A stretch of DNA of 64,000 nt from the NCBI GenBank assembly GCA_035084275.1, contig CM068742.1, forward strand, positions 154,628,001 to 154,692,000, written 5' to 3'. The position numbers were made by a program, and so were the translations under genes. Shown here one piece after another: positions 1 to 64,000 of this stretch. The stretch is from Hydrolagus colliei (Eukaryota). The notes below the pieces were generated by a model. The model was not told the origin of the DNA. It did no database searches and saw only the letters and a program-made list of their open reading frames with translations. The first letter of the stretch is position 1. Each line of letters opens with the position of its first letter.

Positions 1-252
1 CTATGCCAACAATCACCTCAGTAAACCAATGATAGTTTGTGTGGAAGTTGTTACATGAGCATTGGCTGATGTCATTCTCATCAAATACAAAGTCATTACA
101 CTTTACAGTAAATCCTGTGAAGTGCTATAAGACGTCCTCCTGATGTGAAAGACATGGTATCAAATGTGAGGATTATTAACGATGAGGTTTATCTTCCATC
201 CTCTATAAAATGTAAAACATAAAATATAAAATGTTTTCTCTTTATTTTTTAG

Positions 253-314
253 TCGTCAAATGGATTTGGTTGTTGACAACGATTTGGTTCACCCTCAGCT
301 GCCTACATGAGACG
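253..314 (+). CDS. Cytoplasmic-tail exon of an upstream Siglec-15-like paralogue (gene U; 5' part lies left of window); contains in-frame TGA at 308-310
   Basis: Strong acceptor tgttttctctttattttttAG (251-252) and donor ACG|gtaact (315). The 62 bp exon converts phase 2 to phase 1, exactly what is needed to join the 26863-type exon to the 1604 exon. Reads (S)RQMDLVVDNDLVHPQLPT*D. Window position 1 aligns to 27345, downstream of gene B's first tail exon. Confidence 0.55.
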
Positions 315-431
315 GTAACTGTTTTCTCTCGATTACCGATGGCACAATTTTCACCCCGTGCTTTCACTAACCCAGGGCTGTGTCTCAGCTTTGCTCAGTC
401 AGTGACACTCTCACCTCTGGCTCTGGGTGTC

Positions 432-806
432 TTACCTTCAAATCCCTCCACTCCTCTGCACCCCCCCTACCTGTCTAAACTCCTCTCTCCTCAAACCAGT
501 TCCCGTTGCCTTCGCTCCACTGGGTCTGGCCTGCTTCATGTCCCGTGAATCCTCCGCTCCACCCTCGGTGGCTGTGCCTGCAGCCACTATGCCCCAAGGC
601 TCTGGAACTCCCTTCCTCACTCCCTTCATCTTGCCCCTTCTTTTCTCAGTTTCAGGTCCCATCTGAAGACCTTTCTCTTCGACCGTGCCTTTGGTCACCT
701 TTCTCCTGCCCCTGGCTCGGTTCCGGGGTCCACTATTGTGAAGTACTCTGAGATGCCGTCCGTCGTGGAGGGCCCAATATAAATCAAAGTTGTTGTTGTT
801 GTTGTA
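432..806 (+). mobile_element. L2 LINE 3' fragment
   Basis: Similar to the 3' part of the long L2 at 17963-21527; ends in tataaat...(GTT)n tail. Boundaries approximate. Confidence 0.7.
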
Positions 807-959
807 CTATATATACTGTACGATTTTGTTTTTTGTTGTTGGGAGGGCATCCTTGAAGTGCAGTGTTAGAAAAGAGAAAGAAGTTTCTCTGGGTGTCCAG
901 ATTAAATTGTTTATCTACTTCATGGCTCTTTGTGGGTCCATATTGATTATCGCATTCGA

Positions 960-1225
960 CAACAATAACAAAAAGAACAACAAAATTACATATGTGTGGC
1001 GCCTTTCACGTCAGGAGGACATCCCATGGTGCTGGACAGTTACTGCTTCAGACCTGAGCAGAGCACAGGTCTGGGCGGGGGGGGAAGGAGTTGTCGGTGA
1101 GTCTATCGAAGAGGAGATTCTTGAATCGAGACTTGAAAGAGTACAGTCGGGGGGCGAGGCCGAGGATCTTCGGGATGGAGTTCCAGAAGTTGGGGTCAGA
1201 GTGATTGAAGGCTCAACAAATCCAG
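960..1225 (-). mobile_element. L2 LINE 3' fragment
   Basis: Reverse-strand (AAC)n tail followed by gcgcctttcacgtcaggaggacatccc, the L2 3' terminal motif seen throughout the window. Boundaries approximate. Confidence 0.6.
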
Positions 1226-1603
1226 TCGCAACATAACACAGTGAATCCTGTCAAATGCTATCAGATGTACTACGATATGTTTTCTCAATGTCATAGCACC
1301 ACTTTGCTATGTCCCTCAAATGTGAAATACATAATAAATTATTGTTGCTGTTGTTATTAAATCAAATGGAATAATATCCAGCCCCCAGGGCCTGGCATGT
1401 GGTTCCAATTCCCTTTTCATTGTTCATTCCGTGAACCCTTTGTCCGAGCTTTGGGGACTGGGCTTCAGACGTTAAACCCGTATCTCTGGACTTCCACATA
1501 CACAGTACATACACACTCCATTTGATAACTAGTGTCATATTTCCTTTGTGAACCCGATTTCCAATTGCTAATTATTTACCAACATTGTCTGTCTCTCCTT
1601 CAG

Positions 1604-1642
1604 AAGTGTACGGAAATTCTACCATCAGAACCGTCGATGACA
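1604..1642 (+). CDS. Cytoplasmic-tail exon of gene U with membrane-proximal tyrosine (EVYGNSTIRTVDD)
   Basis: Acceptor tgtctgtctctccttcAG, donor A|gtgagt, 39 bp phase 1-1, in frame with the ITIM exon at 2220. Confidence 0.6.
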
Positions 1643-2219
1643 GTGAGTGTTGTCTACCTTTTCTGGTTTATTGTTTATCCTGTCTCTTCTCCGCTCGCAC
1701 TCTGGCTCTGGGTCAGGAAGAGGGGTGTTGGAGCCTCTACGTTGGGGAATTTGAGGTCACACAGTCCAGGCTGATGCTCCAGTGCAGCAATGGGGAGAGC
1801 GCTGCATTGTCAGAAGTGCTGTCCTTTGAATGCGATATTAAACTGAGATCAAGTCCATGTCTGATGAAGTTGTTTTGGTCAGCCACGTGCAGAAACACAT
1901 CTGTTTGTCAAGAGGATCGAAACTTGACTGAGAGGTCCTGTCACCTGTACATCTGGAATGGAACGTGCTGTTGAGAAGGAAATTTCTCTCTCCTTGTGTC
2001 CTGGCCATCATTGTTTCAAATAAAATTGGTTGCTCACTTCATGGCTATTTGTTGGACATTTTAAATGCAAATTGGGCGCCCGGTTTGCTGGTAAAATATG
2101 GTTTTAAGACATTACAATAAAATATGAGGGTTCTAATGACTTTACCCAGGACACACAGTGTATCACAGCTCTCAGCAAGTGGAGGTACATGTCCTGACAC
2201 CATTTTGTTTCTCTTCTAG

Positions 2220-2272
2220 ATGTGATTTATGCTGTCGTCGCCAAATCGAAGAGGAGCTCAGCTGAGCAGTGA
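2220..2272 (+). CDS. Terminal exon of gene U with ITIM (NVIYAVVAKSKRSSAEQ*)
   Basis: Acceptor ttttgtttctcttctAG; VIYAVV fits the ITIM consensus (I/V/L/S)xYxx(L/V); stop TGA 2270-2272; second copy at 54671-54723. Confidence 0.75.
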
Positions 2273-2780
2273 ACTCTGGCCCCTCCCAGAGTCTGCTGTC
2301 CACAGTTTATATCGGGATGTCCTGCAGTGACTTGTATTGGGCCTGGATCAGCAGCCAATACAATAACATTGTACAATCAGTCCCTGAGAGAGCACGGCTC
2401 ATTACAGTCCCAGTGTGTTTGTAGTGTGGCTGTGGCTTGTGGCCTTGCTGTGTGTAAACACATGTTATTGCTGCCTGTGACCTGCTATTTACAATTGTGT
2501 TTATCTCCACTTCAGTGAAATCAAACATGAGGGGGTCAGGCCTAAAAGGAAGAAAGAGTCTATTCTCTGTCAGGGAGAAACACTGCCACTTGGTGGACAT
2601 TCCGGGGTTGAGTACTAAATTTTTTCACAGATACTTTCGATCTACCGTTCAATAATAGTAATCCTTTCTATTGATATAGATGTCTTTAAAACATCATGCA
2701 ATTGCTTGCATCATTGTCCCCAAAACAGTCATAGATTGAGTGACTAAATTATTATTAATCATCAGTTATTAGAAGGGATT

Positions 2781-5700
2781 ATTACCCCCAGAAAAGCAAT
2801 CCATCAATTGACCAACAATTCAATGCTGGGTCAACTGAGGCATGTGGAGTAAGGAAACATGCCGACGTATGAGTGTGCTGCCTTTACACTCTGGGCCACT
2901 GGGGGCACTGCAGGATCGTCATCAGTTCACAAACCAGTGGACAATCTGTCTCAATGTTTTCTAACTGAATGACTTCCTTGATGATTAAACTTCTTTGTCT
3001 CTCTGACCAGTGGATATGTTCCTTATTCCGCAAGTTGTCCCTGAATGTAGATTCGTGGCTGGGCTTTCATTGCTGAAAGCGGCTGCCAAGACTGGTAACA
3101 AGAGAACATGTCTGGGTATGTTACATCTGATGGGTACAGAAAGGGGAGAACTGCGAGAGCCTCAATCGAGCCTAGAGCTGGCAGAGTGAGTGCAACCCGA
3201 GTGAGGCGAGACCAGAGTGAGAAGGAATTGGATGAGAGTGAGAATGAGGTGCAAATTTATAAAATAGACAACAGCCCCCCACTGCCCCAGATCAACCTTC
3301 CTCTCCCTCCGACCACTACGCCTCCTGTCCCTGCTTGACTGGCCCACAGCTTTCCTCTGCTCCTCTCTTCACATTCTCTGTCACACACACCATGGACGCC
3401 ACTATCTGTCCAACAGCACCCACACTGACTGCCCCATCCCCCACTCTCATCTCAATGTCCATCAGTCCCCTTCACTGGGGGCAAACCTTTCCTTCCTCAT
3501 CCATATCCCCACATTCCCTTTCAATGCTCCAGGAGACATGAAGGAGACCAGAGCTCTTTGAATGTAGCGAGCGGGCTCCCTCCTTGCCTCTTCTAGTACT
3601 CTCCTCTAGCCCTTCAATTATCTTACCATCACTTCTTCCTCTCCCTGCCCTCTACCCCTCCTGATCCCAAGCCCCAACTCAGAGTCAAATCCCTCACTGT
3701 CCAATGCTTTATGACATCCTACCGACATGAAAGGCACTATACAGATGTAATTGGTTGTTGATATAATAATTATTCTTGCATTTGATTTAGCACCTATCAT
3801 GTGAGAAGTCTCAAAGCCTTTCACATATATTCACTGGAAAGTGAATTGACTTTACGGTGTATTCTGTGAAGCGCTTTGACACATCACACAGATGATATAG
3901 CAGTTTCACTGTTAATATCAGAAGTTATAGCGGTTTTATTGAGACAGACAGGGGAGAGAATTCCAATGAAAGTTGACAGAAGTAATCTGGGAACTATTGC
4001 TCCGTTAGCCTGACCTCAACAATTTTACTTCTTAATTTTTTCACCAAAGAAAGCAAGTGGACGATTATCACTTGCTTTCTTTAGATATAATAGTAATATA
4101 GTTGACAGTTGGCACATGTTCGGAAAAGGTACATATTGTTTGACCAAACTCATAGACAGTAGAAGCCCATTTATCCGTGACTCGATGAACCGGTACTTCT
4201 GTATAACCGGCACTTCCCAAAAAAGTCCACATTCGATCAACCGGAACGTATCTGGAACAATAGCGGTGGAGCATTTGTGAGTCATTGTCGCATAGGCACA
4301 GTAGTTTGTTTTGCCGCTAGTAGAGGCTAGGTTTATCGGCTTGCTGCAAGTAAGGCTTTTCACCCGCATGGCGTCCTACATTGCAAAAAGAATCGCTGGA
4401 CTGTAAACCTCAACCACAACATCATGGCTTCAAGCGCAGCATCTACCAGTAAAGGTGAACTATGGTACAGTTTACAACATTTACAATAAAGTACCAATAC
4501 AATATCTGGTATTATTTAGTCTGGTGTGTATGGTGTGTGTTAAAATAACTTAAATTTTATTGTGGTGGGTTTTTGGCAGCTGGCCGACCGAATATCCGGC
4601 ATTGGCCAGGTCCAGCTGGTACTGGATGAACGGGCTATTGGTGTAATTTGTTTCAGGAGGTGACAGCTCAGATTAATTTTGGAAAGCTATGTGTTGTAGC
4701 AGAGCGAGATCCAGAAGACTTTCTACAAAACACCACAAGAAACCCAACTTCACAAATGGTAGTCACTGGTTATCAAGAGAAAGACTAGGAACTAGGAACT
4801 GGATTCAACAACGACCACCACAACAACAAAATTGCACTCATATAGCGCCTTTCACGTCGGGAGGACCTCCCAAAGCACTGAACAGTCTGGTCGGAAGCCA
4901 AGTGTGGTATGGTGGGGGTTGGGGTAGGGGGAAGGGGAAGGAGAGTGGAGAGGGGGAAGAGTTTGTGGGGCAGCCGAAGGCGCGGTCGAAGAGGAAGGTC
5001 TTGAGACCGGCCTTGAAGGAGGAAAGGGAGGAGGCGAGGGGGAGGGGCTGCGAGATGGAGTTCCACAGTGTGGGAGCAGAGAGGCTGAAAGCCCGGCCAC
5101 CGATGGTTGAGGGGATTAGGGCAGTGGATGCGGAGCAGGCCTGAGTCTGCTGAACAGACGGGACAGGGGAGGCTGATAGGGGGATAGCAGGTCAGAGAGA
5201 AAGGCGGGGGCAGGCCGTGAATAGCCTTGAAAGTGAGAACGAGGATCTTGAATTCTATCCTCTGGGAGACGGGGAGCCAGTGGAGACGGGCGAGGGTGGG
5301 TGTGTCATGGTCACGACGCCTGATATGGGAGAGTACACGAGCTGCAGAATTCTGAATGATCTGCAGCCTGTGAAGGGAGGAGCTGGGGAGGCCGACGATG
5401 AGAGAGTTCCTGTAGTCAAGCCTGGAAGTGATAAAGGCATGGCTGAGAGTTTCGGGGGCGTCGGGGGTGAGGTAGTAGCGGAGTCTGGCAATATTGCGGA
5501 GGTGATGGAAGGCTGTGCTGGTCATGGAGTGGATGTGATGGAGGAAGGGTATTTGGGGTTGAACAAGTCGCCCAGATTCCTGATTGGCTTCGAGAGGTGG
5601 AGAGAACAGCCTTGAATGCTGATATTGTCAGCACCTGAGGTGTGGAGGCACTGATGTGAGCCAATGAGGAGGACTTCTGTCTTGTTGACGTTGAGTTATA

Positions 5701-6380
5701 GGAAATTTGCCCTCGTCTAGGACTCAATGTCGGACAGACATGCAGACAGAATACCAGTGGTCGTGGAATCAAGGGTTGATGCGAATGACGTTTGTGACAT
5801 TGACCAGGGCAGTTTCTGTTCTGTGGGAGGCACGGAAACCCGATTAGAGGGGTTCGAGGAGTGAGTGTTGTGTGAGGAAAGAGCGGAGCTGGGAGACAAC
5901 CACTCTTTAAAGGACCTTGGTAAAGAAAGGGAGGTTGGAGATGGGCCTGTAGTTAGACAGCTGTGACGCATCGAGGCAAGGATTTTTTACGATGGGGGTG
6001 ATGGTGGCGGTTTTGAAGGCAGTGGAAACAGTCCCTGATGAGAGGGACAGGTTGATAGTGTCAGTGATTACAGGGGCTAGAAGGTGGAGCTGGGTAGTAA
6101 GGAGATGGGTGGGGATGGGATCAAGGGAGCAGGTGGTGAGCTTCATTGAGGGATTGGCTGAAGAGAAGGAAGCAGAGACCTTTGTTGAGTGAACAATGTC
6201 TTAATTTATACTATATGCTGTAGTGCAGTGACCACTTTCCTCACAACAACAACAAACTGACATTTGTATCGTGCCTTTCATGTCACAAGCAAGAGAGTTG
6301 GGTTCAATTCCCAGCAGGGTGAAATGTTGGTCAAATTTCCTTACTCCACAAGCCTCTATTTAACAAACCAGTAAGTCGAC
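2781..6380. repeat. Intergenic spacer of the tandem Ig-receptor unit, present three times (also ~27600-31600 and ~55230-58800)
   Basis: Collinear, highly similar sequence including the same minus-strand L2 fragment in all three copies. Confidence 0.85.
4808..6180 (-). mobile_element. 5'-truncated L2 LINE (RT and 3' end), inactive
   Basis: Minus-strand fragments [13 protein letters not shown]...YRPISNLPF and [12 protein letters not shown]...SRLDYRNSLIVGLP...LHWLPV; (AAC)n-like tail at ~4808. Confidence 0.85.
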
Positions 6381-7025
6381 CTTGTTAGTCAATTACCCTG
6401 GTCCCTTCAGCCTCTGCCATAATTTAGGGGTGATGTAAGTGGGGAAAGCAACGGGTGAAATTGCAATAGATTATTTCCGCTGAACCAACTAGATACCAGG
6501 AACATATCTAAAAAATAACAAAAAAGGAACTCAGTGAGAGTGGGGTTACAAACCCCGTCTTTACACAGAAGTGATGCAATAGTGAAAATCTTCACAAACA
6601 ACATATAATGGCACAATCCGTCAATCTATCAGATGGATCTGAATAGATGTTTGAAGTGGAGGTATATTCTTTACAGCAAGTGGTGGGAGGGGGAGTGATC
6701 CAACTACGAGTTCATGTCAAAATCCCTAATTGTCCAGGGCCTTGGGACATCCTCCCAACATGAAAGTGCTGTAGAATGTCATGTATTTGGGATGTAAAGC
6801 TGTGGGCAATGTAAACGAGTATTAAACTTCATCCAGTGAGTGTAACATGGGGCGGGGGCAGAGTTAGTGTTGAAACATTGCAGAGGATCAGACAAGGGTG
6901 ATGTGGGGGCTTGAGCTCTGGTGGTGACAAGGGAAATGAGGGGAGGAAGGAAAGAGAGGTGTGGCCAGCTGTGTCAGTGTGAGGCAGGCATGCGAGGGGA
7001 AGGAGTGTGTCCTGAGTGAGGGAAG

Positions 7026-7077
7026 ATGATGCTGGGAGCTGTGCTCTGTGCCCTGGTCCTGTCAGCCTCTGCCTTAC
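7026..7077 (+). CDS. Signal-peptide exon of gene A ([18 protein letters not shown])
   Basis: ATG, hydrophobic leader, phase-1 donor C|gtacgt; same exon at 17822 and 59883. Confidence 0.8.
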
Positions 7078-7109
7078 GTACGTACTTTCCAATCAGTAAC
7101 TATAATAAC

Positions 7110-7722
7110 TGCTCACACGCGATTGTCACCTCAATGCTCGACTCCGGCAACTCCCTCCTTGTCGGCCTCCCCAACTCTTCCCTCCACAAGCTGCAGATAA
7201 TCCCAAACTTTGCACCTCGTGTCCTCTCCCACACCAGGCTCTGCGACCCTATCACCCCCACCCTCGCCCTGGTCCACTGGCTGCCTGTCCCTCAGAGAAT
7301 CAAATTCAAGATCTTGATACTCACATTCATGTCCCTCCACCCTCCTACCTCTCTGACCAGCAGATTCCCTATCAACCTACCTGTCCTTCCATTCAGCAGG
7401 CTCCAGCCTTCTCCATGTCTCCCACCCGACCCTCCCTTCCATCTTTGATGGGCTTTCAGGCTCTCTGCTCGAATTCTTTACGGTTCTATCACACAATCCC
7501 TTTGTCTTGCTTCCTCCCTTGCCTCCTTCAATGCCAGTGTCAAGATCCTCCTTTTTGAGTGTCCCTTCAGCCGCCTTCCTATCTCTCTGGCCGCTTTCAT
7601 CACAAACCTGCACCTACTCCACCACCTCGCCTATGCTTGGGTCCTGGCACCTGACTGGTCAACGCCTTGGGACATCCACCCAACATGAAAGGCGATCCAT
7701 AAATATAGTTGTTGTTGTCGTA
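7110..7722 (+). mobile_element. Old L2 3' fragment in intron 1 (also ~59968-60575; split copy in gene B at ~17906-17962 plus 21536 onward)
   Basis: [16 protein letters not shown]...HWLPV...IKFKIL, then L2 3' motif and (GTT)n tail. Confidence 0.75.
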
Positions 7723-8349
7723 TCTCTTTAGTGGCATGATTACAGAGACAGGTGACATCTGTAAATAAGGTTTTTGTCTTTAATGTTGACAGATCTGCCG
7801 CTGAGTGAGTCACTCACTGAGCCTCACAGGGCAAGTGTGTATTTGTTCATTCTGCTTCCATTTGATTTTCCAAACCTCTCTCTGTCTTGTCTTGTCTGTC
7901 CGTCTTTACTCCCCACTGATTCCCAAGGGATGGTACAAATTACCCCCAACGCATATTCTGCGATCCACAATATTTTCGTTTCCTCTTACATCAGATGCCT
8001 GGGTGACAACAAATTATGGTATTTTTATAATACAATAGACCACAAGAGCGTTTTTCTTTCCACAAGCCACCCATTCTAATCCCTCTGTCCAGTCACTTCC
8101 GATTCCCTACACCCTTAATATTGCTCCTCTTCAAACATCTATCCAATTCCCTTTGATAGACTTGATGGATGATGTCTTGAATCCAGTTTGTGGCAGATAA
8201 TTCCACAATTCCATCCTGTGTAAAGACCAAAGTGTTTGCTTGTTAACTCTCTGCCTCTACTTTATCTGTTTTAAGCTCCTCATAGTTCCTCTTTTGTGAT
8301 AGTATTAGATCTGTTCCTATTGCGATATCAGTGAAAATATATTGCTATT

Positions 8350-8845
8350 TCCCCTGTTCCTTGACCACATCACACCCACCCTCGCCCGTCTACACTGCCT
8401 CCCCAGCCACCAGAAGATCGAATTCACGATCTTTATCCTCACTTCCAAGACCATTCACGGCCTTGCCCCCGTCTATCTCTTCGGCATGCTATCTCCCTAT
8501 CAGTCTGCGTGCGCCTCCATTCAGTGGGCTCTGGTCTGCTCCATGTCCCCCGCCCGAACTGTCCTACCATCGGTGGCCAGGCTTTCAACCTCTCTGCCCC
8601 CACACTCTGGAACTCCATCCCTCAACCACTTCACCTTGCTTCCTGTTTCCTCCTTCAAGGCCGGTATCAAAACCTTCCGCTTTGACCGTGCTTTCTGCTG
8701 CCCACCTAACTATCACCACTTTCCAACTCACCATCCCCCTATCCCTACCCCGACCCTTCCCTCCCCCTGCTCGGGTCCCGACCTAACTGTTGAGTGCCTT
8801 GGACGTGAAAAGAGCTCTGAAAATGTAATTTTGTTGTTGTTGTGA
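8350..8845 (+). mobile_element. L2 3' fragment in intron 1 (also ~61205-61710)
   Basis: [14 protein letters not shown]...KIEFTIFILT; ends gtgaaaagagctctgaaaatgtaatt(ttg)n. Confidence 0.75.
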
Positions 8846-9108
8846 CTTGTTCTGACCTCTATCTGGTCGCCCCAAACCTTCTCAATTTGTGAGCCACCAA
8901 TCTGTCAAATCTCTCTTCGGATATGAAACTAATCATCTCTGTGGACTTGCCAACACACTAGGATGCATCTTTTCCATTTTTTTAAATAATGTTCTTCTAG
9001 GGATCCCCAAATTGTCTACATTAATCCCAGCTGTGACCTAACCAAGCTCTTGTCCAAGCTCAGTGTTGCCTGTTTGCTTTTATATTGTGTTCTGGTTCAC
9101 ATTACACA

Positions 9109-9492
9109 ACTTTGGTGAGGCCTCAGCTGGAATACTGTGTTCAATTCTGGTCACCACACTACAGAAAGGATGTGAAGACATTGGAAAGGGTACAAAGAAG
9201 ATCTACTAGGATGGTGCCAGGATTGAGGGACTTCAGCTATGAGGAGAGGCTAGATAGGCTAGGGTTATTCTCTCTGGAGCAGAGAAGATTGAGGGGAGAC
9301 CTAATAGAGGTTCATAAGATCATGAGGGGTTTCGACAGGGCAAATAGAGAAAAACTATTTCCACTCGTGGGCGAATCTGTGACTCGTGGTCACAGATTTA
9401 AAATAGTTTCAAGGCAAAGTAGAGGGGAGCTGAGGAGAAATGTTTTCACTCAGCGAGTTGTTCGAATCTGGAATGGATTGCCTGAAAAGGTG
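9109..9492 (+). mobile_element. Internal CR1 ORF2 C-terminal fragment replacing the V1 splice acceptor of gene A
   Basis: TLVRPQLEYCVQFWSPHYRKD...RIWNGLPEKV; about 97% identical by eye to ~14392-14772; no ATTCTATG tail; absent from gene C at the homologous site (61975-61995). Confidence 0.9.
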
Positions 9493-9904
9493 TGAATGGC
9501 TGGACAATGGAGACCCTGATACAGTGACCGGCAGGTTAGGGTCACCAGTCATCATGTACTGCAAGTTCACTCACCCTCACCCCAGATACACAGGCAACAT
9601 CACCATCAAGTGGAAGGGAGGCTGGGCTGGTCCTGTGTATTTTAAATATACAAACTATAGGCCAGATTCACAGGGAAAGTATCAAAATGTCATTGATGTA
9701 AACGAGGGAGATCGACACCGAGTGATTGGGAAACTGAGGAGGAACGACGCTACAATACAGATAAACCAGCTGAGGGGAGAGGACAATAATAAGACTTTCT
9801 CCTGTTCAACTGTCAACTGTTCAAAAGTTCAACTGCCGTGTGGAGCTCCAGAGTGAGGGCAGACAGTTTGCAACTGACCCCAGATACATGTCTGTATGTT
9901 ACAG
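9493..9904 (+). pseudogene. Disrupted V1 Ig exon of gene A
   Basis: [25 protein letters not shown]...RRNDATIQI; donor G|gtgagg at 9905; frameshifts as described for gene A. Confidence 0.85.
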
Positions 9905-10196
9905 GTGAGGAACGTTGGGAAGTGGGAATGAGACGTGATGATCCTCACTGGTGCCAGAGTCAGTGGGAAGTGTCTCGCCCAGGACGGGCAATAGGGAGCG
10001 CGTGTTCCCAGTGAAGGAAGGTGTGTAACAGGGGCTGGCAGGGACAGTGAGTGAGCGGCTGATGGGAGGGAGGGCTGTGCTGTACACTGACCTGTCACTG
10101 TGGGAATGTCTATTTGCCAAGGCTCCTCACATGTGTGTAACATGTACTGTGTCACACTGACTGCGCTTCAGTATTCCAATCCTGTTCCTGTCTCAG

Positions 10197-10580
10197 GTCA
10201 TGAAGAGAAGCTCCCGTCAGTGACTGGTACCAAGGGAGGTGATGCCACACTGCCCTGCTCCTTCACCAGGCCCAACACACACCAGAATCCTGCCACAGTC
10301 ACAGTGATTTGGAGGAGAGGGAGGCCACAAGGGCAGCCGGTTACTAATGACACTGTTGACCTCACCTCCCGCTCCAACCCCAGGGAGTCAGAGACAGTGA
10401 ATGAAGGAAAGCGCTATAACCTGGTCGGGAATGTGAGGGATGGAGACGCTTCCCTGAGGATCAGGGACCTGGAGTTAAACGACACCAACCGGTATTTCTG
10501 TAACGTACACGTCATGTTTATCCTTAACAGACAACAACAGGACCAGATGACACAGGACTTATCACGGATACAGGTTTTTG
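10197..10580 (+). CDS. V2 (V-set Ig) exon of gene A, open frame
   Basis: Acceptor cctgtctcAG, 384 bp phase 1-1, GDATLPCSF...VIWRRG...[19 protein letters not shown], donor G|gtaag. Confidence 0.85.
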
Positions 10581-11430
10581 GTAAGAAATCTCTTGTCACT
10601 GCGGGTCACTGAATTGGGTAAATAAACAGGTCAATGTTCACTTGGTTTTAACAACGTTAAGTTTGATTAATTCCATATTCTGCTTCTCATGTGTTAATTA
10701 GCACACAGAATATATTCGGAATGAGCAGAAACTTTAGTTGATACAGGAGACAGTGTTTCTTCCCTCTCGTCTGATGTTGACTGGCTAGTCAAAGCCTTAA
10801 CAATTAGACTCACTTTTACCACCGCATTTCCTACCCTACTCTCTTCCTGATCCCAAATTCCAGCTTTGGTGGTGGTGGAAATCCTGATTTGGGAATTCCA
10901 CCCCGTGTGAAAGCCACGCTACAAATGTGATTGTTTATTGTGGCTTAAAGTAGCAGGAAGCTTGCCATGGGGTGTGTACAAGATTACGGAATGACAAGAT
11001 TGGTCTGGGCGATGAAAGCCCATCTGATGTGAAAAGCGCTAAACAAATGTAACTCTGTTGTTGTTGTTCATCTCATCTTTGCAAAACACACACCTACTGT
11101 CCACGCATCGCATCATCAAGTTGCTTTGTAAATGAATCCAGTGTCCTGGCCTCAAATACCCTACCTGGCAACCTGATCCAGTTGTGCGAGTGTGCAACAA
11201 TGGGGAGAGAATGACTGGGATCAGAGTGGAGAGCTCCAGTGGGGAGTGAGCACAGACATGATGCGGAAATATATTTGGTAACAATAACTCTGTTTCTTTA
11301 TACCCAAAGCTCCGGCCGTCATCCTGACTCTGTCCCTTGTGGCTGGTCCACAGAATGAGGGGAGGATGGAAATAGAAGGGTGAACAGTTGAGTTAGTGTA
11401 AGCAGGCAAGAGAGAGGAAGTGGTTAAGAG

Positions 11431-11480
11431 ATGATGCTGGGAGCTGTGCTCTGTCCCTGGTCCCGTCAGCCTCTGCGGGT
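11431..11480 (+). pseudogene. Non-functional upstream duplicate of the leader exon (also 63937-63983; related copies 59225-59274 and partial ~6397-6420)
   Basis: ATGATGCTGGGAGCTGTGCTCTGT then a 1-bp deletion (tgtccctgg vs tgtgccctgg) and no GT donor at the expected site. Confidence 0.65.
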
Positions 11481-11554
11481 TTTAGTGTTGGCCTAATACA
11501 ACTGTCCGAGGTATAGATAGGCGTTTTTGTGAACGGAAACGCGAATCTCGGAAG

Positions 11555-11986
11555 GTGTGTTGCCTACCAGGTGCCAGGGTTGAAGACTTGACTGAGCGGG
11601 TCCAGGAAATTCTGCAAGGGGAAGGGGAAAATCCACTTGTGGTGGTCCATGTTGGGACCCATGAAGTTGAGAGGAAAAGACCTGAGATGCTCCAGGGAGA
11701 GTACCAGAGACTAGGGAGTAAACTGAAAAGTGGAACTTCGAGAGTGGTGATCTCTGGGTTGCTTCCAGTGCCTCGAGCAAGCCAGTTCCAGAATGCTAGA
11801 ATAAGGCACATCAATGCATGGCTGGAGAAGTGGTGTAGGAAGGAGGGTTTCTGGTTCCTAGACCATTGGGACCAATTCTGGGGTAGGTGGAACCAGTACA
11901 AATTGGATGGGTTACACCTGAACAGGGCTGGAACCAATCTCCTTGCAGGAAGGTTGTTGAGTTTTGTGGGGGGGGCTTTAAACTAA
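11555..11986 (+). CDS. CR1 ORF1 C-terminal SGNH esterase-like domain (partial)
   Basis: CCLPGARV...VVVHVGTH...VVISGLLP...DGLHLN, typical of vertebrate CR1 ORF1. Confidence 0.85.
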   Translation: MCCLPGARVEDLTERVQEILQGEGENPLVVVHVGTHEVERKRPEMLQGEYQRLGSKLKSGTSRVVISGLLPVPRASQFQNARIRHINAWLEKWCRKEGFWFLDHWDQFWGRWNQYKLDGLHLNRAGTNLLAGRLLSFVGGALN

Positions 11987-12091
11987 TCCCGGGGGGTGAG
12001 GGTGGGAAACTGATCAGTAGTTCAAATACGGGAGGGGTAATAAGGAGGACAGGAGAAAAATGCAGAGGAAGTAATTTGTGCCTTAGAGTGC

Positions 12092-14794
12092 ATGTATGTA
12101 AATGCACGAAGTTTGAGAAATAAAATTGGTGAGCTGCAGGCTCAGGTTGCTGTGAGGCGATATGATGTTATAGCAGTAACAGAGACTTGGCTCCAGCATG
12201 GGCAGGAATGGGAGTTGAACATTCCTGGTTATAATGTATTCAGGAGGGATAGAGAAGGGAGAAAAGGGGGCGGGGTGGCAATTTTAGTTAAGGACTCAGT
12301 GACTGCCTTAGAAAGGAACGAGGTGGAAGAAGGACTAAAAACCGAATCTATCTGGTTAGAATTGAGGAATAAAAAAGGTACAGTTACACTGTTAGGGGTA
12401 TACTATAGACCACCAAATAGTGGGGAGGAGATAGACAAGCAGATCTGCAAGCGTATCACGGAGAAATGCAGAGCTAATAGAGTAGTGATAATGGGTGACT
12501 TCAACTATCCCAACATAGACTGGCAGAATAGTAGAGTAAAGGGCAAGGAGGGAGAAGAATTCCTGAAGTGTGTGCAGGACAACTTTCTTGATCAGTATGT
12601 TTCCAGTCCAACGAGGAAAGAAGCATTGCTGGATCTAGTTTTGGGAAATGAGGTAGGGCAAGTTCAACAGGTTTCTGTAGGTGAGCATCTAGGGAATAGT
12701 GACCACAATATCGTTAGATTCAGAATCATTATGGAAAGGGATAAGGAACGATCACAGGTGAGGACACTCAACTGGAAAAGGGCTAATTTCAATGAGTTGA
12801 GGTGGGACCTAGCCAAGGTGGATTGGAAAGAAAAATTGGCAGGTAAGACAACTAACGAGCAGTGGGCAGCGTTCAAAGAGGAGATAGTTCAGGCACAGGT
12901 CAAAAGCATCCCCACAAAGGTGAAATGTAAGGCATCCAAACCTCCCTGGATGACTAAGGAAATCGGGGCCAAAATCAAACAAAAAAAAGAGGCTTATGAT
13001 AAGTGTCAGGCTCAAAATTCAGAAGGGAACCAAGCAGAATATAGGAAGTGTAGGATAGAACTAAAAAAGGAAGTTAGAGGGGCAAAGAGACTGCATGAAA
13101 AACAATTAGCGAGTAAGATTAAGGGGAACCCTAAGGTTTTTTACCAACATATTAAGAGTAAAAGGTTGGTCAAGGAGAGGGTGGGGCCAATTAGGGACCT
13201 AGGAGGAAATCTCATTGTGGAGGCAGAGGGCATGGCTGATGTACTGAATGAGTACTTCGCCTCTGTCTTCACAAAAGAAAATGATACAGCCAATGCCATG
13301 GTATTAGAGGAGAGGGTAGGAGAAATGGATAGAATAATTATAACCAGAGAGGAAGTGCTAAAAAGGTTGACGTCGCTCAAGGTGGATAAGTCACCTGGTC
13401 CGGATGGGATGCACCCTAGGTTACTAAGTGAGGCACGGGAGCAAATAGCAGGGACTCTGGCCACGATCTTTCAATCTTCCTTGGACACAGGGGTCGTGCC
13501 AGAGGACTGGAGGATAGCTAATGTTACTCCCTTGTATAAAAAGGGGCAGAAGGACAAGCCTGGTAACTACAGACTAGTCAGTCTAACGTCGGTAGTGGGC
13601 AAACTTCTAGAGTCCATAATCAGGGACAAGGTAGATCTTCACTTAGAAAGATATAGGCTAATAAAGGACAGTCAACATGGATTTGTTAAAGGCAAATCTT
13701 GCCTTACAAATCTGATAGAATTTTTTGATGAGGTAACGGAATGGGTGGATAATGGTAGCGCAGTTGATGTAGTTTACATGGACTTTCAAAAGGCATTTGA
13801 CAAAGTGCCACATGAGAGACTTATTATGAAATTAAAGGCCCATGGCGTAAAAGGGACAGTGGCAGCGTGGATCCACAACTGGCTGCGAGACAGAAAGCAG
13901 AGAGTTGTAGTGAGCGGCTGTTTTTCAGATTGGAGGGAAGTGAGCAGTGGTGTGCCACAGGGATCGGTTTTGGGACCATTGCTGTTTGTAATCTACATCA
14001 ATGATCTGGACTTGGGTGTACGGAGTACAGTTTCCAAGTTTGCAGATGACACTAAGTTAGGGAGAATAGTAAACAGTGAGGAGGATAGTAGCCATCTGAA
14101 AGAGGATATAGACAAATTGGTAAAGTGGGCAGACACATGGCAGATGAAGTTTAATGCAGAGAAGTGTGAGGTGATGCATTTTGGGAGAAGAAATGAAGGG
14201 AGGCAATATAGGCTAGATAGTACAATTTTAAATGGTGTGAAGGAACAGAGAGACCTGGGGATTTGTGTTAGTGACTCGTTGAAGGTGGCAGGACAGGTAG
14301 ACAAGGCTGTTAAGAAGGCTTATGGGATACTAGGCTTTATAAATAGGGGTATAGAGTACAAAAGTCAGGAAGTGCTGACTAACCTCTATAGGACTTTGGT
14401 GAGGCCTCAGCTGGAATACTGTGTTCAATTCTGGTCACCACACTACAGAAAGGATGTGAAGGCATTGGAAAGGGTACAACGAAGATTTACTAGGATGGTG
14501 CCAGGATTGAGGGACTTCAGCTATGAGGAGAGGCTAGATAGGCTAGGGTTATTCTCTCTGGAGCAGAGAAGATTGAGGGGAGACCTAATAGAGGTTTATA
14601 AGACCATGAGGGGTTTCGACAGGGCAAATAGAGAAAAACTATTTCCACTCGTGGGTGAATCTGTGACTCGTGGTCACAGATTTAAAATAGTTTCAAGGCG
14701 CAGTAGAGGGGAGCTGAGGAGAATTTTTTCACTCAGCGAGTTGTTCGAATCTGGAATGCATTGCCTGAAAAGGTGGTGGAGGCTGATTCGATAA
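12092..14794 (+). CDS. CR1 ORF2: AP endonuclease + reverse transcriptase; 1-bp deletion near the C-terminus
   Basis: YVNARSL, VTETW, MGDFNYP, SDHN (APE); [33 protein letters not shown] (RT). At ~14725 gagaattttttc lacks a base relative to gagaaatgttttc in the 9109 fragment, shifting the last ~20 codons. Confidence 0.95.
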   Translation: MYVNARSLRNKIGELQAQVAVRRYDVIAVTETWLQHGQEWELNIPGYNVFRRDREGRKGGGVAILVKDSVTALERNEVEEGLKTESIWLELRNKKGTVTLLGVYYRPPNSGEEIDKQICKRITEKCRANRVVIMGDFNYPNIDWQNSRVKGKEGEEFLKCVQDNFLDQYVSSPTRKEALLDLVLGNEVGQVQQVSVGEHLGNSDHNIVRFRIIMERDKERSQVRTLNWKRANFNELRWDLAKVDWKEKLAGKTTNEQWAAFKEEIVQAQVKSIPTKVKCKASKPPWMTKEIGAKIKQKKEAYDKCQAQNSEGNQAEYRKCRIELKKEVRGAKRLHEKQLASKIKGNPKVFYQHIKSKRLVKERVGPIRDLGGNLIVEAEGMADVLNEYFASVFTKENDTANAMVLEERVGEMDRIIITREEVLKRLTSLKVDKSPGPDGMHPRLLSEAREQIAGTLATIFQSSLDTGVVPEDWRIANVTPLYKKGQKDKPGNYRLVSLTSVVGKLLESIIRDKVDLHLERYRLIKDSQHGFVKGKSCLTNLIEFFDEVTEWVDNGSAVDVVYMDFQKAFDKVPHERLIMKLKAHGVKGTVAAWIHNWLRDRKQRVVVSGCFSDWREVSSGVPQGSVLGPLLFVIYINDLDLGVRSTVSKFADDTKLGRIVNSEEDSSHLKEDIDKLVKWADTWQMKFNAEKCEVMHFGRRNEGRQYRLDSTILNGVKEQRDLGICVSDSLKVAGQVDKAVKKAYGILGFINRGIEYKSQEVLTNLYRTLVRPQLEYCVQFWSPHYRKDVKALERVQRRFTRMVPGLRDFSYEERLDRLGLFSLEQRRLRGDLIEVYKTMRGFDRANREKLFPLVGESVTRGHRFKIVSRRSRGELRRIFSLSELFESGMHCLKRWWRLIR

Positions 14795-15448
14795 CAACTT
14801 TTAAAAGGGAATTAGATCTTTATTTAGGGAGAACGGGTCTATTAGGCTATGGGGAGCGGGCAGGGCAATGGGATTGAATCGCTCTTTTCAAAGAGCCGGC
14901 ACAGACTAGATGGGCCGAATGGCCTCCTTTTGTGCCGTAAAATTCTATGATTCTATGATTCTATGATTCTAATCGAGGATAAGAATTGGGAAAATAGGAA
15001 AATAGGAATAGATTATTTCTGCTGATCAGCCAGTTAGTTACAAGAGGAACATATCTAAAACCACGACAAAAAAGGAACCAAGGGGAGGTTAGAAACCTCG
15101 ACTTTACACAGAAGGGGTGCAATTGTCCAATTAAGTTACAAACAATAATTAAGGCAAAATCCGTCAAGTCTATCAAGGGGTTTGAATAGATGTTTGAAGA
15201 GGAGATACATTAAAAGGTGTGGTGGGAGGGGGAGTGGCCCAACTCCTAGCTCGGGTCCAAATCCTTAATTGTCCAGGGCCTTGGGACATCCTCCCAACAT
15301 GAAAGTGCTGTACAATGTCATGTATTTGGGATATAAAGCTGTGGGCAGTGTAAACGAGTATTAAACTTCACCCAGTGAGTGTAACATGGGGCGGGGGCAG
15401 CGTTAGTGTTGAAACATTGCAGAGGATCAGACAAGGGTCATGTGGGGG

Positions 15449-17699: not shown

Positions 17700-17821
17700 G
17701 GGGGGGTGGAGCTCTGGTGGTGACAAGGGAAGTGAGGGGAGGAAGGAAAGAGAGGTGTGACCAGCTGTGTCAGTGCGAGGCAGGCGTGCGAGGGGAAGGA
17801 GTGTGTCCTGAGTGAGGGAAG

Positions 17822-17873
17822 ATGATGCTGGGAGCTGTGCTCTGTGCCCTGGTCCTGTCAGCCTCTGCCTTAC
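17822..17873 (+). CDS. SIGLEC15-like: Gene B exon 1, signal peptide
   Basis: [17 protein letters not shown], donor C|gtacgt. Confidence 0.85.
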
Positions 17874-59882: not shown

Positions 59883-62800
59883 ATGATGCTGGGAGCTGTG
59901 CTCTGTGTCCTGGTCCTGTCAGCATCTGCCTTACGTATGTACAATCAGTAACTATAATAACTGATCACACGCGATTGTCACCTCAATGCTCGACTCCGGC
60001 AACTCCCTCCTTGTCGGCCTCCCCAACTCTTCCCTCCACAAGCTGCAGATAATCCCAAACTTTGCACCTCGTGTCCTCTCCCACACCAGGCTCTGCGACC
60101 CTATCACCCCCACCCTCGCCCGGTTCCACTGGCTGCCTGTCCCTCAGAGAATCAAATTCAAGATCTTTATACTCACATTCAAGTCCCTCCACCCTCCTAC
60201 CTCTGTGACCAGCAGATTCCCTATTAACCTACCTGTTCCCTCCATTTAGCAGGCTCCAGCCTTCTCCATGTCTCCCAGCCGACCCTCCCTTCCATCTTTG
60301 ATGGGCTTTCAGGCTCTCTGCTCCAATTCTTTGGAGTTCTAGCACACAATCCCTTTGTCTTGCTTCCTCCTTTGCCTCCCTTAACGCCAGTGTCAAGATC
60401 CTCCTTTTTGAGTGTCCCTTCAGCCGCCTTTCTATCTCTCTGGCCGCTTTCATCACAAACCAGCCCCTCCCCCACCACCTCCCCTATGCTTGGGTGCTGG
60501 CACCTGACTGGTCAACGCCTTGGGACATCCACCCAACATGAATGGCGCTCTACAAATATAGTTGTTGTTGTCGTTTCCCTTTAGTGGCATGATTACAGAG
60601 TAAGGTGACATCTGTAAATAATGTTTTTGTCTTTAATGTTGACAGATCTGCCGCTGAGTGAGTCACTCACTGAGCCTCACAGGGCAAGTGTGTATTTGTT
60701 AATTCTGCTTCCATTTGATTTTCCAAACCTCTCTCTGTCTTGTCTTGTCTGTCCGTTTTCACTCCCCACTGATTCCCAAGGGATGGTACAAATTACCCTC
60801 AATGCATATTCTGCGATCCACAATATTTTCATTTCCTCTTACATCAGATGCCTGGGTGACAACAAATGATGGTATTTTTAAAATACAATAGACCACAAGA
60901 GCATTTTTCTTTCCACAAGCCACCCATTCTAATCCCTCTGTCCAGTCACTTCCGATTCCCTACACCCTTAATATTGCTCCTCTTCAATCATCTATCCAAT
61001 TCCCTTTGATAGACTTGATGGATGATGTCTTGAATCCAGTTTGTGGCAGATAATTCCCACAATTCCATCCTGTGTAAAAACCAAAGTGTTTGCTTGTTAA
61101 CTCTGTGCCTCTACTTTATCTGTTTTAAGCTCCTCATAGTTCCTCTTTTGTGATAGTATTAGATCTGTTCTTATTGCGATATCAGTGAAAATATATTGGT
61201 ATTTCCCCTGCTCCGTGACCACATCACACCCACCCTTGCCCGTCTTCACTGCCTCCCCAGCCACCAGAAGATCGAATTCACGATCTTTATCCTCACTTCC
61301 AAGACCATTCACGCCCTTGCCCCCGACTATCTCTTTGGCATGCTATCACCCTTTCAGTCTGCGTGTCCCTCCGTTCAGTGGGCTCTGGTCTGCTCCATGT
61401 CCCCCGCCCGAACTGTCCTCCCATCGGTGGCCAGGCTTTCAACCTCTCTGCCCCCACACTCTGGAACTCCATCCCTCAACCACTTCACCTCGCTTCCTGT
61501 TTCCTCCTCCAAGGTCGATCTCAAAACCTTCCTCTTTGACCGTGCCTTCTGCTGCCCACCTAACTATCCCCACTTTCCTACTCACCATCCCCCTACCCCT
61601 ACCTCGACCCTTCCCCCCCCTGCCCAGGTACCAACCCAACTGTTGAGTGCCTTGGAATGTGCGCCCGACGTGAAAGGAGCTCTGAAAATGTAATTGTGTT
61701 GTTGTTGTGACTTGGTGTGACCTCTATCTGGTCGCCACAAACCTTCTCAATTTGTGAGCCACCAATCTGCCAAATCTCTCTTCGGTTATGAAACTTATCA
61801 TCTCTGTGGACTTGCCAACACACTAGGATGCATCTTTTCCATTTTTTTAAATAATGTTCTTATAGTGGATCCACAAATTGTCTACATTAATCCCAGCTGT
61901 GACCTAACCAAGCTCTTGTCCAAGTTCAGTGTTGCCTGTTTGCTTTTATATTGTGTTCTGGTTCACATTACACCATGTGTGACCTCACAGGGCTCAGTGA
62001 GAATGGCTGGACAATGGAGACCCTGATATAGTGACCGGCAGGTTAGGGTCACCAGTCATCATGTACTGCAAGTTCACTCACCCTCACCCCAGATACACAG
62101 GTAACATCACCATCAGGTGGAAGGGAGGCTGGGCTGGTCCTGTGTATTTTAAATATACAAACTATAGGCCAGATTCACAGGGAAAGTATCAAAATATCAT
62201 TGATGCAAACGAGGGAGACGACACCGAGTGATTGCGAACCCGAGGAGGAACGACGCTACAATACAGATAAACCAGCTGAGGGGAGAGGACAATAATAAGA
62301 CTTTCTCCTGTTCAACTGTTCAACTTTTCAAAAGTTCAACTGTCGTGTGGAGCTCCAGGGTGAGGGCAGACAGCTTGAAACTGACCCCAGCTACACATCT
62401 GTATGTTACAGGTGAGGAACGATGGGAAGTTGGAATGAGACGTGATGATCCTCACTGGTGCCGGAGTCAGTGGGAAGTGTCTCGCCCAGGACGGGCAATA
62501 GGGAGCGAGTGTTCCCAGTGAAGGAAGGTGTGTAACAGGGGCTGGCAGGGACAGTGAGTGAGCGGCTGATGGGAGGGAGGGCTGTGCTGTACACTGACCT
62601 GTCACTGTGGGAATGTCTATTTGCCAAGGCTCCTCACATGTGTGTAACATGTACTGTGTCACACTGACTGCGCTTCAGTATTCCAATCCTGTTCCTGTCT
62701 CAGGTCATGAAGAGAAGCTCCCGTCAGTGACTGGTACCAAGGGAGGTGATGCCACACTGCCCTGCTCCTTCACCAGGCCCAACACACACCAGAATCCTGC

Positions 62801-63865
62801 CACAGTCACAGTGATTTGGAGGAGAGGGAGGCCACAAGGGCAGCCAGTTACTAATGACACTCTTGACCTCACCTCCCGCTCCAACCCCAGGGAGTCAGAG
62901 ACAGTGAATGAAGGAAATCACAATAACCTGGTCGGGAATGTGAGGGATGGAGACGCTTGCCTGAGGATCAGGGACTTGGAGTTAAACGACAACAACCGGT
63001 ATTTCTGTAACATACACGTCATGTTTATCTATAACAGACAACAACAGGACCAGATGACACAGGACTTATCACGGATACAGGTTTTTGGTAAGAAATCTCT
63101 TGTCACTGCGGGTCACTGAATTGGGTAAATAAACAAGTCAATGTTCACTTGGTTTTAACAACGTTAAGTTTGATTAATTCCATATTCTGCTTCTCATGTG
63201 TTAATTAGCACACAGAATATATTCGGAATGAGCAGAAACTTTAGTTGCTACAGGAGACAGTGTTTCTTCCCTCTCATCTCATGTTGACTGGCTAGTCAAA
63301 GCCTTAACAATTAGACTCACTTTTACCACCGCATTTCCTACCCTACTCTCTTCCTGATCCCAAATTCCAGCTTTGGTGGTGGTGGAAATCCTGATTTGGG
63401 AATTCCACCCCGTGTGAAAGCCACGCTACAAATGTGATTGTTTATTGTGGCTTAAAGTAGCAGGAAGCTTGCCATGGGGTGTGTACAAGATTACGGAATG
63501 ACAAGATTGGTCTGGGCGATGAAAGCCCATCTGATGTGAAAAGCGCTAAACAAATGTAACTCTGTTGTTGTTGTTCATCTCATCCTTGCAAAACACACAC
63601 CTACTGTCCACGCATCGCATCATCAAGTTGCTTTGTAAATGAATCAGTGTCCTGGCCTCAAATACCCTACCTGGCAACCTGATCCAGTTGTGCGAGTGTG
63701 CAACAATGGGGAGAGAATGACTGGGATCAGAGTGGAGAGCTCCAGTGGGGAGTGAGCACAGACATGATGCGGAAATATATTTGGTAACAATAACTCTGTT
63801 TCTTTATATCCAAAGCTCCGGCCGTCATCCTGACTCTGTCCCTTGTGGCTGGTCCACAGAATTAG
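59883..63865 (+). pseudogene. Gene C: disrupted Siglec-15-like receptor, sister of gene A. Leader 59883-59934, V1 61991-62411 (frameshifted), V2 62704-63087 (open), C2 stub 63816-63865
   Basis: Shares A's 1-bp V1 deletion (giving TAG at ~62028), a 32-bp insertion at 62311-62342 and the C2 truncation; extra 1-bp deletion at ~62219; lacks the CR1 piece. Confidence 0.85.
62704..63087 (+). CDS. V2 Ig exon of gene C, open frame
   Basis: 384 bp phase 1-1, AG/GT intact; several changes at otherwise conserved residues (KRY to NHN, S to C). Confidence 0.75.
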
Positions 63866-64000
63866 GGGAGGATGGAAATAGAAGTGTGAACAGTTGAGTT
63901 AGTGTAAGCAGGCAAGAGAGGGCACATGGTGAAGAGATGATGCTGGGAGCTGTGCTCTGTCCCTAGTCCCGTCAGCCTCTGCGGGTTTTAGTGGTGGCCT

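Follow-up and report, generated by a model that had tools for sequence, protein, structure and literature searches.

Siglec-15 is regarded as an old, conserved, single-copy Siglec with a purely activating role and is now a target of drugs against cancer and bone disease; in tetrapods, it has a lysine in its transmembrane (TM) segment as well as a short tail, and it pairs with DAP12. The TM lysine couples Siglec-15 to DAP12/DAP10, and its residue R143 is essential for sialic acid binding (PMC7226832). A survey of fish Siglecs describes Siglec-15 as a conserved activating receptor, and cartilaginous fishes are not covered there (PMC7226832). In the Siglec-5/14 and Siglec-11/16 pairs, near-identical ligand regions are joined to opposite signaling ends, exons are homogenized, and null members occur (PMC4042635 and PMC5701461). 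Here, we analyzed a stretch of 64,000 nt from Hydrolagus colliei (hereafter the window; GenBank assembly GCA_035084275.1, contig CM068742.1, positions 154,628,001-154,692,000 of the forward strand), which is probably part of a cluster of Siglec-15-like type I receptors. These receptors would belong to a paired family that evolves by birth and death, with most of the copies in view dying. A full-text literature search found no description of a cartilaginous-fish Siglec-15-like family, which is known in databases solely as automatic annotations.

The window comprises three head-to-tail units (A, B, and C), along with a pair of detached 3' tails and an intron remnant, all on the forward strand, as are the features below unless indicated otherwise. 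Exons were located by mapping Callorhinchus milii proteins onto the window (tblastn with P0001 and P0002). A sequence-only reading of this DNA had proposed a tandem array consisting of a U tail, units A, B, and C, and a remnant near 31800; each of these elements is present, although A and C are dead copies. A motif search recovered every motif quoted in that reading, at its position and on the forward strand, namely FTHPH at 9566, 23034, and 62073; GNPRRND at 23196; CRVE at 9834, 23271, and 62341; IWRRG at 10307, 24272, and 62814; and CTAEGEPP at 25587. In a self-BLAST comparison, 2121-11494 and 54572-64000 were collinear over 9.4 kb at 95-97.5% identity, and the tail blocks at 2779-6376, 27598-31830, and 55228-59018 showed 89-94% mutual identity. 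The remnant (31837-32250) retains only intron-1 sequence of a further unit, without a leader exon, and is cut off by a retroelement; it is 82-83% identical to 7955-8318, 22276-22661, and 60808-61161. Such repeated blocks, together with the shared frameshifts and truncations described below, uphold the proposal of tandem birth-and-death evolution.

The relationship of these units to Siglec-15 was examined with unit B, the only copy in the window with an intact reading frame. Both V1 and V2 of B belong to the Pfam V-set family (V2, E=3.3e-15), and its C2 domain has Ig_3 and I-set matches below the curated cut-offs. In phmmer searches of the PDB, for which we inspected all 19 V1 hits (E up to 1) and the best 60 of 182 V2 hits, human Siglec-15 (7zoz) was the top match of V1 (E=1.3e-17, followed by CD33 at 3.6e-7) and of V2 (E=2.8e-13, followed by MXRA8 at 1.6e-8), and it was also among the matches of C2, whose CTAEGEPP motif occurs in mammalian and bird Siglec-15 as well. 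The AlphaFold model of B (mean predicted local distance difference test score of 80.7) contains three Ig domains and a helix at residues 396-428, and one of its V domains superposed on 7zoz with a template-modeling score of 0.89, a root-mean-square deviation of 1.5 Å, and 33% identity. These rankings, the shared motifs, and the fold superposition substantiate the kinship of V1, V2, and C2 with Siglec-15 that had been proposed at the outset.

We also considered whether the units could represent another V-set family (PILR, CD300/MDIR, or NITR) or a non-immune Ig family, with the Siglec-15 motifs arising by convergence. The V-set fold is generic, V2 weakly matches MXRA8, TIM, SCN4B, and NKp30 in the PDB, and a fold search with the whole model of B was led by generic three-Ig proteins (titin, IgLON, and DIP). 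However, only the single-domain match to 7zoz is informative in that search, and it was the sole near-complete single-domain superposition; moreover, the E-value of Siglec-15 is ahead of the next match by 10 orders of magnitude for V1 and by 5 for V2, and a TM lysine in the paralogs aligns with that of Siglec-15, all of which makes this explanation extremely improbable. The resemblance to PILR, which had been suggested from two short motifs, was rejected: PILR is absent from all 19 V1 matches and from the best 60 of the 182 V2 matches, and the architecture is one of three Ig domains.

By its FTHPH and GNPRRND motifs and the arginine of its CRVE motif, V1 is predicted to be a Siglec-15-type lectin domain. 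The F-strand arginine is kept in V1 of B as Arg126, within FSCRVEL, which aligns with human YFCRVEF, and the CRVE remnants of A and C retain it too. Among paralogs, this position is variable, with a Cys in P0001, a Trp in P0003, and a Leu in some sharks. In V2 of B, the site of the Siglec-15 arginine is occupied by His250 (YFCHVH), and all of the chondrichthyan V2 domains examined contain a non-arginine residue there; canonical sialic acid binding by V2 is therefore not expected.

The closest database proteins to B are C. milii LOC103174418 (75% identity) and LOC103188801 (71%), whereas a C. milii Siglec-15 isoform X1 model is 54% identical, and the next matches are shark and ray proteins that are named Siglec-15 or Siglec-12 and share the V1-V2-C2 layout. 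Annotated chondrichthyan homologs (C. milii LOC103188801, LOC103174418, and LOC103188796, as well as proteins from Heptranchias, Chiloscyllium, Mustelus, Pristis, Amblyraja, and Mobula) have 41-75% identity and a leader-V1-V2-C2-TM architecture, and V-V-C2 is the layout that the annotated Siglec-15/12-like proteins usually have among chimaera, sharks, and rays. The double V is thus not peculiar to this cluster, contrary to what the sequence-only reading had implied. The window copies are identical to no annotated protein (at most 75-82% per domain). In our domain tree, the V1 clade (support 96/92) and the V2 clade (90/92) each span chimaera, sharks, and rays, which indicates that the double V predates the split between chimaera and elasmobranchs; the window copies form a V2 subclade of their own, and CD33, on a long branch, lies outside both clades. 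The V domain of tetrapod Siglec-15 groups toward V1, in a part of the tree where resolution is poor. MAFFT placed this domain under V2 in an alignment of the family (alignment A1), which we rejected as a positional artifact, as motifs, scores, and the tree tie it more closely to V1. In an exhaustive, profile-free search with V2, domains resembling it were also found in lungfish, amphibian pIgR-like, teleost, and lamprey proteins. In Amblyraja radiata, P0005, P0014, and P0150 (LOC116971575, LOC116971577, and LOC116971578) are encoded at near-consecutive loci on one 131-Mb record, and some Amblyraja members have a repeated V2 (V2-V2-C2...V1), suggesting that clusters and domain shuffling occur in rays too.

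Two signaling forms are encountered in this family. In alignment A1, the TM lysine of tetrapod and lungfish Siglec-15 aligns with a lysine in P0002, P0003, and several shark proteins, whereas a different, lysine-free TM segment is common to B, P0001, Pristis P0012, and Heptranchias P0157. A TM lysine with a short tail is found in P0002, P0003, and the first unit of the comparison locus described below, and is absent from B. Tails carrying an ITIM (immunoreceptor tyrosine-based inhibitory motif) are present in P0001 (VIYSEV and VIYAVV), P0015, and Heptranchias P0157; the tails of P0001 and P0157 are long and end in ...DVIYAVVTKSKGRSAEQ and ...AAIYAAVVKSTKQN, respectively, near the window's last exon in sequence. 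Pristis P0012 has the lysine-free TM segment and no tail tyrosine. A search with the TM segment and ITIM tail of P0001 matched P0001 alone, so the evidence for the age of the ITIM tail comes from P0001, P0015, and P0157 together with the short similarity of the last exon.

Through P0015, we reached a C. milii locus (L001; record MU249832.1, 137.75-137.79 Mb), which is paralogous to the window rather than the same DNA (80-91% identity in exons); it was used for comparing gene structure only and never for supplying letters in gaps. Its gene order is a lysine-TM unit, an ITIM unit, and a further lysine-TM unit. Between the first two units, exons and introns alike are 92-94% identical from the leader up to the C2 end, and divergence sets in precisely at the TM segment. 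A tandem repeat with a period of ~72 nt lies immediately upstream of the C2 exon in each of these two units (L001 11507-12205 and 24454-24791), and the same repeat recurs downstream of the TM exon of the ITIM unit (25631-25931). The alternation of lysine-TM and ITIM units with nearly identical ectodomains supports a paired-receptor system in the family, such as had been postulated, and P0001 and the second L001 unit provide the intact ITIM-bearing paralogs, in C. milii and outside the window. While both signaling modules are present in L001, the TM segments and tails seen in the window belong to the ITIM lineage only, and a search for a lysine-TM (activating) exon across the window found none, which places the activating partners elsewhere. 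Both loci contain family members and repeats only, and a flanking single-copy gene is absent from both.

Unit U enters the window with its cytoplasmic exon 2 (253-314, S-RQMDLVVDNDLVHPQLPT, stop, D), which is bounded by AG and GT and, in translation, is interrupted in frame by TGA at 308-310, placed two codons ahead of the splice that would join it in frame to the ITIM exon. The homologous exon in L001 (27197-27265) reads ...PPAGD, with GGA in place of this TGA. The last exon of U (2220-2272), with its acceptor and stop, encodes the ITIM (DVIYAVVAKSKRSSAEQ, followed by the stop) and is 82% identical to the C terminus of C. milii P0001. The 3' tail block of U (2121-6376) is repeated at 54572-58820 (95%) and, from 2779 onward, at 27598-31830 (89-94%). 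A second ITIM exon (DVIYAVVAKSKRSLAEQ, followed by the stop; 54671-54723) is an orphan that lacks upstream exons and sits at the 5' boundary of the duplicated block's second copy. The last exons read DVIYAVVAKSK..., in which VIYAVV (2222-2239 and 54673-54690) fits the pattern [ILVS]xYxx[ILV]. Given these exons and the intact ITIM paralogs of C. milii, the ancestral tail did carry an ITIM, as had been proposed; in none of the window copies is the ITIM joined to an intact ectodomain.

The window copies had been thought to lose the ITIM by four different routes, namely a stop, a deletion, orphaning, and truncation. Each of these lesions is seen, but not all of them are independent: because the U tail with A and the pre-C tail with C constitute one duplicated dead block, the independent uncoupling events number two (the U nonsense codon and a deletion in B), to which one shared truncation is added. 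In U, the duplicated block begins at 2035, equivalent to 54458, beside a 98% inverted copy of a transposable element (TE); this boundary separates the ITIM exon from cytoplasmic exon 2, which left the second ITIM exon orphaned.

Unit A consists of a leader exon (7026-7077; 89% to P0001/P0002 by tblastn and 96.7% identical to the B leader region), a V1 pseudo-exon (9503-9904), a mapped V2 exon with an open reading frame (10197-10580), and a truncated 3' end. Compared with B, its V1 has (i) a 1-nt deletion at 9513/9514, (ii) a 31-nt insertion at 9806-9836, and (iii) a 1-nt insertion near the 3' end, which split the domain over three reading frames. At 11306-11496, the first ~40 nt of the C2 exon are fused to sequence lying just upstream of a leader exon and to a leader fragment (MMLGAVLC, 11431-11454); 11227-11347 matches B 25435-25562, and 11348-11496 matches 6935-7072, so that this fusion is a deletion of C2, the TM segment, the tail, and intergenic DNA. 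Unit C has the same organization, with a mapped leader exon (59883-59934), a V1 pseudo-exon (61991-62411; relative to B, 1-nt deletions at 62020/21 and 62218/19, a 32-nt insertion at 62308-62339, and a 1-nt insertion at 62391), and a V2 exon (62704-63087) whose frame is open, but whose conserved RY motif is lost (NHNN) and which has an extra Cys. Its 3' end (63007-64000) is 98% identical to A 10500-11494 and has the same truncated C2, with a leader fragment at 63937-63960.

The lesions common to A and C are the 1-nt deletion near the start of V1, the 31/32-nt insertion before CRVE, and the 1-nt insertion near the donor, while one further 1-nt deletion in V1 is found in C alone. Identity between A and C is 98% through the C2-stump junction. 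The shared frameshifts and the shared C2 truncation indicate that both derive from one dead gene; A and C are pseudogenes rather than decoys. Extra degenerate leader copies occur at 59225-59272 (detected by mapping and alignment, 640 bp upstream of the C leader), 11431-11454, and 63937-63960, the last two each following a truncated V2, which points to repeated unequal exchanges at leader exons.

A and C, with the tails upstream of them, might also be a single locus placed twice on a gap-rich scaffold. The window contains 13 runs of N, rather than the six gaps listed earlier, all within 34728-52367; microsatellite, satellite, or SINE-like sequence flanks every one of them. They fall in a zone of satellites, microsatellites, and TEs (33960-52367, without assigned strand) in and beside which mapping of the C. 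milii proteins detected no family exon, so no reading frame or exon was read across a gap. The second copy begins directly after this zone, and the two blocks are collinear over their 9.4 kb, as a misplaced duplicate would be. Their 95-97.5% identity with many indels corresponds, however, to a divergence far beyond that usual for alleles; in addition, a 382-bp long interspersed nuclear element (LINE) fragment is found in A only and a 1-nt deletion in C only, and the V1 insertion measures 31 nt in A versus 32 nt in C. We consider an assembly artifact very unlikely, and the same differences count against the haplotype or assembly duplicates raised with the original proposal.

Unit B is built from five exons with compatible phases, ten canonical splice sites, and an open frame of 431 codons. 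These are a leader exon (17822-17873; ATG, GT donor, phase 1); an intact V1 exon (22951-23340) and an intact V2 exon (24162-24575), both with AG/GT borders; an exon for C2, the stalk, and the TM segment (25525-25932; AG/GT), which includes CTAEGEPP and Arg401, has no TM lysine, and corresponds in part to the helix at 396-428 in the model; and a cytoplasmic mini-exon (26863-26893; AG/GT, phase kept) that is homologous to L001 26113-26169. The end of V2 in B (24511-24542) is longer in frame by 30 nt (10 codons) than in A (10545-10548), C (63052-63055), and the C. milii proteins. Arg401 is specific to B and lies near the outer end of the TM helix, where relatives have a Gly, Val, or Met.

Downstream of the mini-exon, the alignment of U and B reveals a deletion junction in B at 27597-27598, where 2.5 kb were lost, including cytoplasmic exon 2 and the ITIM exon. 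The lost sequence is the equivalent of U 250-2778, with U 1-249 matching B 27345-27599 and U 2779-2900 matching B 27598-27719, and it is followed by the 3' tail block of B (27598-31830; self-BLAST). The second of these matches, which starts at the deletion junction, spans 122 nt of 100% identity in surroundings of 92-94% and may reflect either a brief stretch of conversion or chance. If reading continued past the TM exon or the mini-exon of B, the resulting tails would have 3-20 residues and no tyrosine.

The leader, V1, and V2 exons of A and B are 95-97% identical (dS 0.03-0.05, with dN, the nonsynonymous counterpart of this synonymous divergence, about equal), whereas their unique intron sequence is 79-82% identical or unalignable. 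Judged from these sequences, such exon-limited likeness would fit gene conversion better than purifying selection. Between the window and L001, V2 gives dN/dS ratios of 1.1-3.0 (uncorrected binomial p of 0.03-0.28), a statistically weak hint of positive selection on V2. For V1, dN/dS is 0.36-0.57 when B is compared with the C. milii ITIM unit. Furthermore, 3-4 frameshifting indels have accumulated in the single V1 exon of A and C, compared with none across 1295 nt of B, which, as a rough estimate, suggests that B was guarded by selection until recently.

These data bear on the most serious alternative, a pure pseudogene graveyard in which all of the window copies, B included, are nonfunctional debris at the edge of the functional cluster and ITIM loss is simple decay that carries no adaptive significance. 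In its favor, A and C are clearly dead, two exons and the native 3' end are missing from B, TEs and satellites occupy about half of the window, and V2 dN/dS among the window copies is 0.9-1.15; no database protein is more than 75% identical to B, which would thus have gone uncalled by annotation pipelines. On the other hand, B keeps its 431 codons and all ten splice sites, although its sisters, at ~5% exon divergence from it, acquired 3-4 frameshifting indels in V1, and at the density seen in A and C, B should carry roughly 4-5 of them as a rough estimate; the V1 ratio of 0.36-0.57 likewise counts against this explanation. We rate this explanation a real contender, somewhat short of an even chance.

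We therefore favor a paired, Siglec-15-like cluster with mostly dying copies, in which the following course of events is seen. Units duplicate in tandem, their exons remain alike in a manner resembling gene conversion, and copies die by frameshifts, deletions, and LINE insertions; A and C represent one dead gene whose duplication included the tail of the gene upstream. B, and perhaps U, would be, or would recently have been, an ITIM-less receptor sharing the ligands of its inhibitory relatives, and B may act as a silent decoy or, via Arg401, as an adaptor-coupled activating receptor. As read from the sequence, B and possibly U could be the only candidates in the window for such an ITIM-less partner, and the odds that B works as a decoy or activator, rather than being just the most recent casualty, are about even. 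A bolder version, in which paired Siglec-15 receptors are ancient, pre-dating the chimaera/shark split, with a lectin V1 and a rapidly evolving, non-lectin V2 common to the lysine-TM activating and ITIM inhibitory genes, and B is a third signaling type caught at birth (its ITIM deleted and a membrane arginine gained, with a placement like that in FcR-gamma-associated receptors), and hence a newly made activating or decoy partner such as pathogen-driven receptor evolution has been proposed to generate, appears unlikely to us.

Several points weigh against the favored interpretation. That B and the remnant adjoin the pre-C tail and C depends on scaffold joins over the 13 gaps; the intact ITIM and lysine-TM partners are those of a relative, C. 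milii, and not of the window; and U has its upstream exons beyond the window edge. A V2 dN/dS of ~1 between window copies fits relaxed constraint as well as diversifying selection. As for B, its normal 3' end is lost, possibly together with the poly(A) site; a 3-kb LINE in sense orientation sits in its intron 1; Arg401 is a single substitution at the helix edge and may be meaningless; and expression of B is predicted from its sequence alone.

Mobile elements and satellites account for much of the remaining sequence, and a search of the minus strand for other genes detected TE fragments and low-complexity open reading frames (ORFs) only. The LINE in intron 1 of B (18120-21288) is degenerate, encodes endonuclease and reverse transcriptase (Pfam Exo_endo_phos and RVT_1), and is similar to TE copies in L001. 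A CR1-type LINE at the end of unit A (11486-14791) contains an esterase-like ORF1 (Pfam Lipase_GDSL_2) and an open ORF2 of 916 aa, the relatives of which carry RVT_1 and Exo_endo_phos (best matches, 59% identical); this LINE looks young and possibly active. The 382-bp fragment specific to A (9108-9489) is a LINE 3' fragment, 96% identical to 14393-14785 and absent from C, that replaces the original V1 acceptor region; this fragment copy (9109-9502 by the LINE comparison) is located 2 kb upstream of the CR1-type LINE. An element of 2-2.6 kb is present at 15448-17666 (+), 37467-40076 (+), and 52548-54458 (-), with 96-98% mutual identity, and no Pfam match was obtained for the two of its ORFs that were scanned (16461-16739, +; 37911-38795, -). 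The copy at 52548-54458 (-) is a 98% inverted copy of 15448-17364 that abuts the second duplicated block, and it may have mediated the block rearrangement. The retroelement fragment at 32228-33456 (+) comprises an RVT_1 piece (32228-32479) and a downstream ORF without a Pfam family, whose GIY-YIG-like motif, RLYIGETG, recalls Penelope-like elements. Within the gap zone, a GA-rich satellite with a 38/74-bp period (42814-44282, +) faces a CT-rich, reverse-complement array with a 32/66-bp period (49703-51726) at a distance of ~5 kb and with ~72% identity, and a (CCCTCC)n array of 950 bp and 68% GC lies between them (45060-46006).

Taken together, the data indicate that the Siglec-15 relatives of cartilaginous fishes are three-domain (V-V-C2) receptors encoded in tandem multigene arrays as lysine-TM/ITIM pairs with homogenized ectodomains. 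The window itself is mostly a decaying fringe of this family, which limits its direct value. If the interpretation is true, paired Siglec signaling, known so far mainly from primate CD33-related Siglecs, would date to early jawed vertebrates, and the copies would constitute a natural series (intact inhibitory, ITIM-deleted, nonsense-truncated, and dead) for studying how an inhibitory receptor becomes a decoy or an activator.

The window resembles Siglec-15 in the FTHPH, GNPRRND, and CRVE motifs of V1, in the CTAEGEPP motif of C2, and in the top PDB match of both V domains, to which the C. milii and shark paralogs add the TM lysine. It differs from Siglec-15 in that (i) the chondrichthyan ectodomain is V1-V2-C2, with an extra V2, rather than V-C2; (ii) the genes form a tandem cluster with multiple members, whereas Siglec-15 is a single gene; (iii) the window copies have a lysine-free TM segment and an ITIM-type tail, whereas Siglec-15 has no ITIM tail; and (iv) most of the window copies are pseudogenes. 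Isoform X2 of the lungfish (Protopterus annectens) Siglec-15 (XP_043934105, P0156) similarly has two V domains before C2, a TM lysine, and the tail motif STYENV; however, both of its V domains are of the V1 type, each with CRVEL, which points to an independent internal duplication rather than to the chondrichthyan V1/V2 pair. With the primate CD33-related pairs, the chondrichthyan receptors share neighboring, near-identical ectodomains, exons homogenized in a conversion-like manner, and pseudogenes. They nevertheless belong to another Siglec lineage, as CD33 is a weak second match for V1 (3.6e-7 versus 1.3e-17 for Siglec-15); their pairing is far older, being common to chimaera and sharks, and their activating member uses the lysine-bearing TM segment of Siglec-15.

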